A stretch of DNA of 63,846 bases, the filler included, from Calcarisporiella thermophila CBS 279.70 (lineage: Eukaryota; Fungi; Calcarisporiellomycota): NCBI RefSeq assembly GCF_041956535.1. It is 7 parts of 7 records of this genome, joined end to end, with 100 filler letters (N's around TTAATTAATTAA, not from the genome) between each part and the next. Parts side by side here need not be neighbours in the genome. Positions count along the whole stretch, not along the records: positions 62,572 to 63,846 come from NW_027192214.1; 6 more parts are not named here. The stretch is one strand, 5' to 3'. Below are positions 62,472-63,846 of the stretch, piece after piece. The translations under genes and the position numbers were made by a program. The notes under the pieces are model-generated. The model had not been told where the DNA came from. It saw nothing but the letters and a program-made list of their open reading frames with translations, and ran no database searches. The stretch's first letter is position 1, and the number at the start of each line of letters is the position of its first letter.

Positions 62472-62650
62472 NNNNNNNNNNNNNNNNNNNNNNNNNNNNN
62501 NNNNNNNNNNNNNNNTTAATTAATTAANNNNNNNNNNNNNNNNNNNNNNNNNNNNNNNNNNNNNNNNNNNNGGACTACTCCGTCCCCCATCTCTTTCCTC
62601 AGTAAATTTTTCTTTATAAAAATTATAAAACCTACTCACGTGATAAGGAT

Positions 62651-62723
62651 GGTCACTTGGCTCAGTTGGCAGAGCGTCTGCCTAGTAAGCAGAAGGTCAT
62701 GAGTTCGATTCTCATAGTGACCA
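62651..62723 (+). tRNA. tRNA-Thr(AGT)
   Basis: GGTCACT/AGTGACC acceptor stem; anticodon arm TCTGC-CTAGTAA-GCAGA; GAGTTCGATTCTC T-arm. Confidence 0.95.
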
Positions 62724-62970
62724 ATACAATAGCGTAAAATTTTTTCCTATACTAATGAATAGGAATACCGATTGTATTCTGGTATAAGTATTTGCCAATT
62801 TAGAAAATAGAAATAAAGATTTAACATTAAGTGAAAAAATTCTAAATATTTTAGATTCTGTTGCAGTTGAAAAAGCTAAATTAATTAAAAGTGCATAAAT
62901 AAAATCACAAAAGTTAAGTTTTAATCAATTTAAAAAGAATATAGATAATAGCTGAATAGGTAAAAGTAAA

Positions 62971-63043
62971 TGGTCACTATGAGAATCGAACTCATGACCT
63001 TCTGCTTACTAGGCAGACGCTCTGCCAACTGAGCCAAGTGACC
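62971..63043 (-). tRNA. tRNA-Thr(AGT), identical inverted copy
   Basis: Exact reverse complement of 62651-62723. Confidence 0.95.
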
Positions 63044-63126
63044 ATCCTTATCACGTGAGTAGGTTTTATAATTTTTATAAAGAAAAATTTACTGAGGAAA
63101 GAGATGGGGGACGGAGTAGCTTAGTA

Positions 63127-63440
63127 GCCGTCCCTGGATGGCACAGTGGTTAAGAGCCCCGGGGATTAACCAATGTGTGCTGGGTTCGATTTCCGGCGAC
63201 GGCACCTGTACTAGAGATGGGTCCGGGACATACTCTAGGAATTGAGCTATAAGCTACTTCGTTCTTAATAATTGGATATTGATCGTCCTCAGAAAACAAA
63301 GAAATACGTTTAATATAGTGACTTGTCAGAAGAAACACACGTAAGCAATGGTTGAGCGTTAGAAATAGTGTGCAAATCTTTTCATTTAACTTGTATAGGA
63401 GACTTTTCAATAAAAGATCCTTCAATCTCAAAAAAAAAAA
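63127..63440 (+). mobile_element. tRNA-derived SINE, family B, full length with poly(A) and TSD
   Basis: A box TGGCACAGTGG (63139-63149); B box GGTTCGATT (63183-63191); GCCGTC/GACGGC acceptor-like stem; AATAAAAG then poly(A) 63430-63441; TSD ACGGAGTAGCTTAGTA at 63111-63126 and 63441-63456. Confidence 0.9.
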
Positions 63441-63539
63441 ACGGAGTAGCTTAGTAACCTAATATTTGCAAGCGGTGCACAACCAACGCAGTGGAAACCA
63501 TTAGTCATGCTTACCTGGAATGCCCGGCCATAAACCCTA

Positions 63540-63785
63540 CTTTATCGAAAAGTATCCTATACAAGTTAAATGAAAGGATTTGCACGCTATTTCTACCATT
63601 GCTTACATGTATTGCTTGTTTACTGATGGATACCAATATCAAATTATTAACGAAGTAGCTTTTTGCTCGATTCCTAGAGTATGTCCCGGACCCATCTCTA
63701 GTACTGGTGCCGTCGCCGGCAATCGAACCTAGCACACAATGGTTAAGCTTCGGGGCTCTTAACCATTGAGCCATCCAAGGACGGC
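63540..63785 (-). mobile_element. Second, diverged copy of SINE family B (no poly(A) or TSD visible)
   Basis: Reverse complement GCCGTCCTTGGATGGCTCAATGGTTAAGAGC...GGTTCGATTGCCGGCGACGGCACCA-GTACTAGAGATGGGTCCGGGACATACTCTAGG... aligns with 63127-63416, with substitutions and indels. Confidence 0.88.
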
Positions 63786-63790
63786 ACCCG

Positions 63791-63839
63791 TATGACTAGT
63801 TCTTAAATTTTATTTTGATCAATCATATGACTAGTTCTT
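63791..63839 (-). mobile_element. Putative extremely 5'-truncated retro-insertion (21 nt) flanked by a 14-bp TSD
   Basis: TATGACTAGTTCTT at 63791-63804 and 63826-63839; the insert reads TGATTGATCAAAATAAAATTT on the minus strand, matching the family A 3' end TGATTGATC-A(n). Confidence 0.55.
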
Positions 63840-63846
63840 TTTTTTT

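Follow-up and report, generated by a model that had tools for sequence, protein, structure and literature searches.

A probable tRNA-derived SINE with a perfect 16-bp target-site duplication lies head to head with a tRNA-Thr gene

Introduction

Under the SINEBase definition, a tRNA-derived SINE matches a tRNA at 60% identity or more across a stretch of 60 nt or longer (PMC3531059). Fungi in which SINEs have been described include Magnaporthe, Blumeria and Aspergillus, the described examples including MgSINE (472 bp, ~100 copies), SINE2-1_BG and the AfuSINE2 families (PMC5063351), and the class is therefore not unexpected in fungi. Among elements that sit beside tRNA genes are the TRE5 retrotransposons. 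TRE5-A inserts at distances of 37–90 bp and Dictyostelium fasciculatum TRE5-A.2 at 31–98 bp (PMC5006619, Table 1); TRE5 elements lie strictly head to head with the tRNA gene, and most TRE5-A copies are found at 47 ± 3 bp (PMC5391098).

Here we analyse a locus at which a young SINE, inserted by target-primed reverse transcription (TPRT) next to a tRNA-Thr gene, had been predicted from the sequence of the window, that is, the whole 63,846-nt stretch of DNA. The analysis covers the piece at window positions 62572–63846 (1275 bp).

Results

Two identical 16-mers, at 63111–63126 and 63441–63456 on the plus strand (16/16 bases), enclose 314 nt. They constitute the longest exact direct repeat in the piece and exceed the longest repeat in every one of 500 shuffles of it (at most 14), in full agreement with the perfect 16-bp target-site duplication of the original prediction. 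The enclosed element, copy 1 (63127–63440, plus strand), has the predicted length of 314 nt and the predicted poly(A) end, an A-run at 63430–63441 in which the pure A tail itself occupies 63430–63440 (11 A, or 12 with the first base of the duplication). A tRNA-Thr(AGT) gene, detected by Rfam (72.2 bits) and by ARAGORN, lies at 62971–63043 on the minus strand. The element is upstream of this gene and head to head with it, and the distance from the first base of the tRNA to the first base of the element is 83 bp with the 5′ duplication counted in, exactly as had been proposed; relative to base 1 of the tRNA, the 5′ copy of the duplication spans −68 to −83. Copy 1 is a genuine element with clean insertion marks. 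Its tRNA-like head, A tail and long duplication, together with a 5′ boundary fixed by a second copy, uphold its description as a SINE inserted by TPRT. Its description as young is borne out only loosely: the 32 duplication bases carry no mutation, which by simple arithmetic limits divergence to ~9% per copy at the 5% level, and the two copies of the element have diverged by 9.5% plus indels.

The second copy, of which the prediction made no mention, lies inverted at 63541–63789 (minus strand), 84 bp past the 3′ duplication. It is identical to copy 1 at 220 of 243 aligned bases (90.5%), lacks three stretches of 3, 32 and 8 nt as well as the last ~26 nt including the tail, and stops after the equivalent of AATAAA; no target-site duplication was found around it. 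Copy 2 is older, truncated or interrupted. Similarity between the copies begins at the first base after the duplication, so the 5′ boundary of the element is fixed independently of the duplication. Because copy 2 has 3–4 further 5′ bases, which give it a terminal stem of 9 bp compared to 6 bp in copy 1, the latter is probably slightly 5′-truncated, 3–4 nt short relative to copy 2. Slight 5′ truncation is a usual mark of TPRT (PMC5391098).

The existence of a second, inverted copy means that the element is repeated, and it weakens the possibility, named in the prediction as the finding that would speak against a SINE, of a single-locus host ncRNA gene. The known copies number two, both in one 1.3-kb piece, and SINE sequence accounts for 44% of it. 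The copies are non-tandem, and two within 1275 bp compare with the 100 or more that are usual for SINE families. From their sequences, a divergence of 9.5% with indels suggests an established family with subfamilies. The 84 nt between the copies (63457–63540) have a GC content of 49%, above that of the flanks, and may come from a different element or represent another version of the 3′ part of copy 2.

The tRNA-derived head of copy 1 (63127–63207, plus strand) has a class-I tRNA layout, which was found by counting back from the T loop. Its first six bases (63127–63132) pair with 63198–63203, corresponding to tRNA positions 67–72, to form an acceptor-like stem. Position 73, the discriminator, is an A (63204), followed by CCT in copy 1 and CCA in copy 2, and the A-CCA that closes the copy 2 head is the end of a mature tRNA. 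The Pol III box A (63139–63149, plus strand) starts at +13 and box B (63183–63194, plus strand) at +57, a spacing of 44 nt, the same as in the neighbouring tRNA-Thr. Shuffling produced a pair of boxes at tRNA spacing once in 10000 elements and never in 10000 heads. The head also departs from a tRNA in several respects. There are 5 extra nt between tRNA positions 7 and 8, position 61 in box B is T in copy 1 and G in copy 2 and so is not the canonical C in either, and the anticodon arm no longer closes, its bases pairing with the D-loop side as a long hairpin. The copy 2 head folds with z = −3.3.

ARAGORN at an 80% threshold called the two true tRNAs of the piece plus exactly the two SINE heads and nothing further, and at 90% it called both heads after in silico removal of the 5 extra nt. 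Rfam did not score the heads as tRNA, because of the extra bases, the absence of C at position 61 and the re-paired anticodon arm. Identity to tRNA-Thr, the sole tRNA compared, is 57% and 54% over 66 nt for the two heads, against the 60% of the SINEBase definition, and is mostly confined to the boxes. Thus, tRNA-Thr is not established as the parent, and the neighbouring gene is unlikely to have been the source of the head. At the anticodon position, the heads carry ATT and CTT followed by AA, which we take to suggest a Lys or Asn parent tRNA. One 35-aa ORF of the head gave a weak Pfam match to BmKX (E 0.06), which fell far below the cut-off and was dismissed as chance.

Downstream of the head is an AT-rich body unrelated to tRNA (63208–63429, plus strand; 33% GC) with an AATAAA at 63409–63414, so that copy 1 displays the full arrangement of head, body and A tail. 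T-runs in the body are never longer than 4. Some hosts need five or more T for Pol III termination, and in such hosts Pol III could therefore read through the body. The element is short (314 nt) and non-coding, well inside the SINE size limit of <700–1000 bp. No Pfam family scored above the cut-off in six ORFs, no stable stem-loop was found at the 3′ end (z > −0.4) and no tandem repeats were found in the piece.

The tRNA-Thr(AGT) gene has no encoded CCA. This, with the anticodon AGT, presumably points to a eukaryotic host. Its upstream region (63044–63110, minus strand) contains TATA-like elements at −27 and −36, and these suggest, by their sequence and position, that the host may use TATA-assisted Pol III promoters. 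The same region holds an 8-bp palindrome at −8 to −15, which is E-box-like (region 63051–63079, and its mirror).

A second, identical tRNA-Thr gene, absent from the original prediction, lies at 62651–62723. It belongs to the left arm (62575–62723, plus strand) of a perfect 149-nt inverted repeat whose partner is 62971–63119. Each arm consists of the tRNA-Thr gene and 76 nt upstream of it, 9 of the target bases included. Identity between the arms ends exactly at the discriminator base of the tRNA, and the downstream flanks of the two genes, which lie tail to tail 247 bp apart, are unrelated, each with its own T-run. We suspect misassembly, a chimeric template or gene conversion behind this perfect repeat. 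The simplest account would be that there are two true, identical tRNA genes and that one upstream flank was copied onto the other; the problem leaves the SINE itself unaffected. The first bases of the piece (62572–62575) differ from the right arm and, read outward, match positions 4–7 of the SINE head, as if a further copy began 7–8 bp nearer to the left tRNA. The three differing bases are insufficient to call a second insertion.

The right end of the piece contains a 14-bp direct repeat (63791–63804 and 63826–63839, 35 bp apart) and a run of 9 T (63838–63846). By sequence, these may be the duplication and A tail of a third, minus-strand element, placed ~48 bp upstream of the copy 2 head.

Searches for relatives used exact patterns and covered collections dominated by prokaryotic, viral and metagenomic sequence, so empty searches are no proof of novelty. 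Neither the SINE nor the tRNA turned up when metagenome contigs, viral contigs and bacterial and archaeal genomes were scanned for exact patterns, blastn against plasmids gave no match, and one 16-nt word had no match in the papers searched. A sequencing-run index returned one soil metagenome (0.05 share) and no RNA run; the metagenome matches were to the tRNA only, with none on the SINE. On one of its contigs, 195 nt long, tRNA-Thr is matched exactly over 76 nt but is followed downstream by a different, AT-rich flank, and from this exact copy it follows that a related organism lives in soil. The spurious ORFs of the piece had no protein match in the collection and no homologue among proteins of similar length. 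The sole HMMER hit, to an ORF in a satellite array with a period of ~155 bp, showed no DNA similarity and was rejected as chance; the array (contig positions 1–10534, ~68 copies of ~155 bp) is unrelated.

Set against described systems, the element most resembles SINE2 elements (PMC3531059). It shares with them a length <700 bp, a head with boxes A and B, an unrelated body, an A tail and the lack of coding capacity, as well as dispersed, non-tandem repetition, seen here in two copies, and a long target duplication, and it differs in its rearranged head (5 extra nt, anticodon arm re-paired, no C61). By its length, internal boxes, head–body–tail structure and target-site duplication the element is a tRNA-derived SINE; none of these features failed. 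Like the fungal SINEs, it is tRNA-derived, of similar size and flanked by target duplications (4–14 bp in AfuSINE2), but its duplication is 16 bp, its tail is pure A and it has an AATAAA; this comparison is by description only. The candidate family is probably uncatalogued. The mammalian B2, Dip and Ves SINEs also have an AATAAA shortly before the A tail (PMC8466645), but in our element no Pol III terminator lies between AATAAA and tail, and there is no sign of common descent.

Two further groups share some traits with the locus. TRE5-A, -B and -C and NLTR-B of dictyostelids likewise occupy sites upstream of tRNA genes in head-to-head orientation and end in an A tail (PMC5006619, PMC5391098, PMC5911963). 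However, they are LINEs or deletion derivatives rather than tRNA-headed SINEs, their modal distance is ~47–50 bp and their targeting was shown on many copies, as opposed to the one here; the element is not a TRE5 member. Helenus (TRIMp3; PMC10886601) is a short mobile element with a tRNA-derived promoter that is found in fungi, but it is of LTR type with 4–5-bp duplications, whereas our element is A-tailed with a duplication of 16 bp, and is not a Helenus LTR.

Discussion

The reading we favour, and consider likely, is a tRNA-derived SINE of SINE2 type that was mobilized by a LINE through TPRT and placed without dedicated targeting of the tRNA gene. What is observed is the product; for the enzyme and the individual steps we infer the course below from the standard TPRT model (PMC10886601, PMC3747384). 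A source copy would be transcribed by RNA polymerase III by means of its internal boxes A and B, giving an RNA that would keep the tRNA-like terminal stem and end in an A tract. The ORF2 protein of a LINE would nick the bottom strand at the end of the duplication nearer to the tRNA gene, 67/68 bp upstream of that gene, and reverse transcription would be primed there on the A tail and would halt 3–4 nt before the 5′ end of the RNA. A second nick, 16 bp further out, would then generate the duplication. The AATAAA, A tail and 16-bp duplication fit an L1/Tx1-like partner, which we propose by analogy; no partner LINE is present within the 1275-bp piece. Mammalian L1 nicks at a T-rich site. The first nick at our locus falls between a G-run and a single A and is not T-rich, so the partner would be unlike mammalian L1 in its choice of site.

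An origin that involves no self-amplifying family seems improbable to us: the copies would be retrocopies (processed pseudogenes) of a host Pol III ncRNA with a tRNA-like 5′ domain. Only two copies are known, and the head does retain a long hairpin and a terminal stem that is still paired, over 6 bp in copy 1 and 9 bp in copy 2. On the other hand, no Rfam family matches, a difference of 9.5% with indels of 3, 32 and 8 nt between the copies is of the kind found between SINE subfamilies, and the order of head, AT-rich body and A tail is SINE anatomy (PMC3531059). We regard it as very improbable that the element is a solo LTR containing a tRNA, of the Helenus (TRIMp3) kind, or an artefact of assembly. 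Helenus LTRs, which are found in fungi, carry boxes A and B of a tRNA (PMC10886601), but their duplications of 4–5 bp contrast with the 16 bp and A tail here. The suspect perfect inverted repeat lends the artefact some colour; however, an assembly error would not put a duplication exactly at the 5′ boundary of the family and again after an A tail, and the copies, being 9.5% different, are not a duplicated read. Slimmer still is the chance that the SINE RNA helped to choose the site by pairing with the duplicated target. Positions 63250–63262 of the body are the reverse complement of 13 target bases (63111–63123) at 12 of 13 positions, the odd pair being G-U, and such complementarity was reached 5 times when the element was shuffled 10000 times and 47 times in as many shuffles of the target. 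This match was, however, picked post hoc among 34 inverted repeats and is a single case, and there is no inversion of the twin-priming kind; most likely it is due to chance. After the antisense match, a second, colinear 11-mer likeness is seen (63286–63296 and 62596–62606). The empty site was also considered as a decayed relative of the SINE, and was rejected as the alignment was not significant (45 of 500 shuffles).

Whether the insertion was aimed at the tRNA gene bears on the placement part of our reading. SINE sequence makes up 44% of the piece, so a SINE adjoining a tRNA gene is not unlikely, and the most likely reason for its position is that the neighbourhood is dense in SINEs or the chromatin open, not dedicated targeting. 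It is unlikely, in our estimate, that the SINE was carried by a LINE that targets tRNA genes via Pol III factors in the manner of TRE5, at a set distance upstream and with 5′ ends facing. Consistent with such a carrier, the orientation and 83-bp distance of copy 1 are within TRE5 ranges, the insertion site lies just past the TATA-like elements at −27 and −36, and the G-rich nick site suggests that position and not sequence selected the target; the four bases at the left edge that match head positions 4–7 are too short to count. The case for targeting nevertheless rests on one insertion, and one site cannot demonstrate it, the accepted test being several copies at a like distance (PMC5006619). 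The TRE5-A peak at 47 ± 3 bp is well short of 83 bp. Copy 2, moreover, was ~168 bp upstream until copy 1 inserted, and its orientation is reversed, with its 3′ end toward the tRNA, the opposite of TRE5 geometry. Every tRNA-targeted non-LTR element listed in PMC5911963 comes from a dictyostelid, with no SINE among them, the literature searched contained no report of a SINE with TRE5-like tRNA-gene targeting, and the piece has no APE-RT LINE coding sequence. The case of a tRNA-headed SINE family that a TRE5-like LINE guides to sites upstream of tRNA genes in a lineage outside the dictyostelids, perhaps a fungus, is, if anything, slightly less likely than such a carrier as a whole.

Read as a LINE-mobilized SINE without dedicated targeting, the locus would represent a plain new SINE family that adds to repeat catalogues and offers presence/absence markers, and, should the host be a fungus, few of the SINEs described from fungi are as clean. 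If the family were aimed at tRNA genes, safe-haven targeting of Pol III genes would have arisen independently once more, a SINE would be shown to take over the aim of the LINE that moves it, and this genome would be expected to contain a targeted LINE that has yet to be described.
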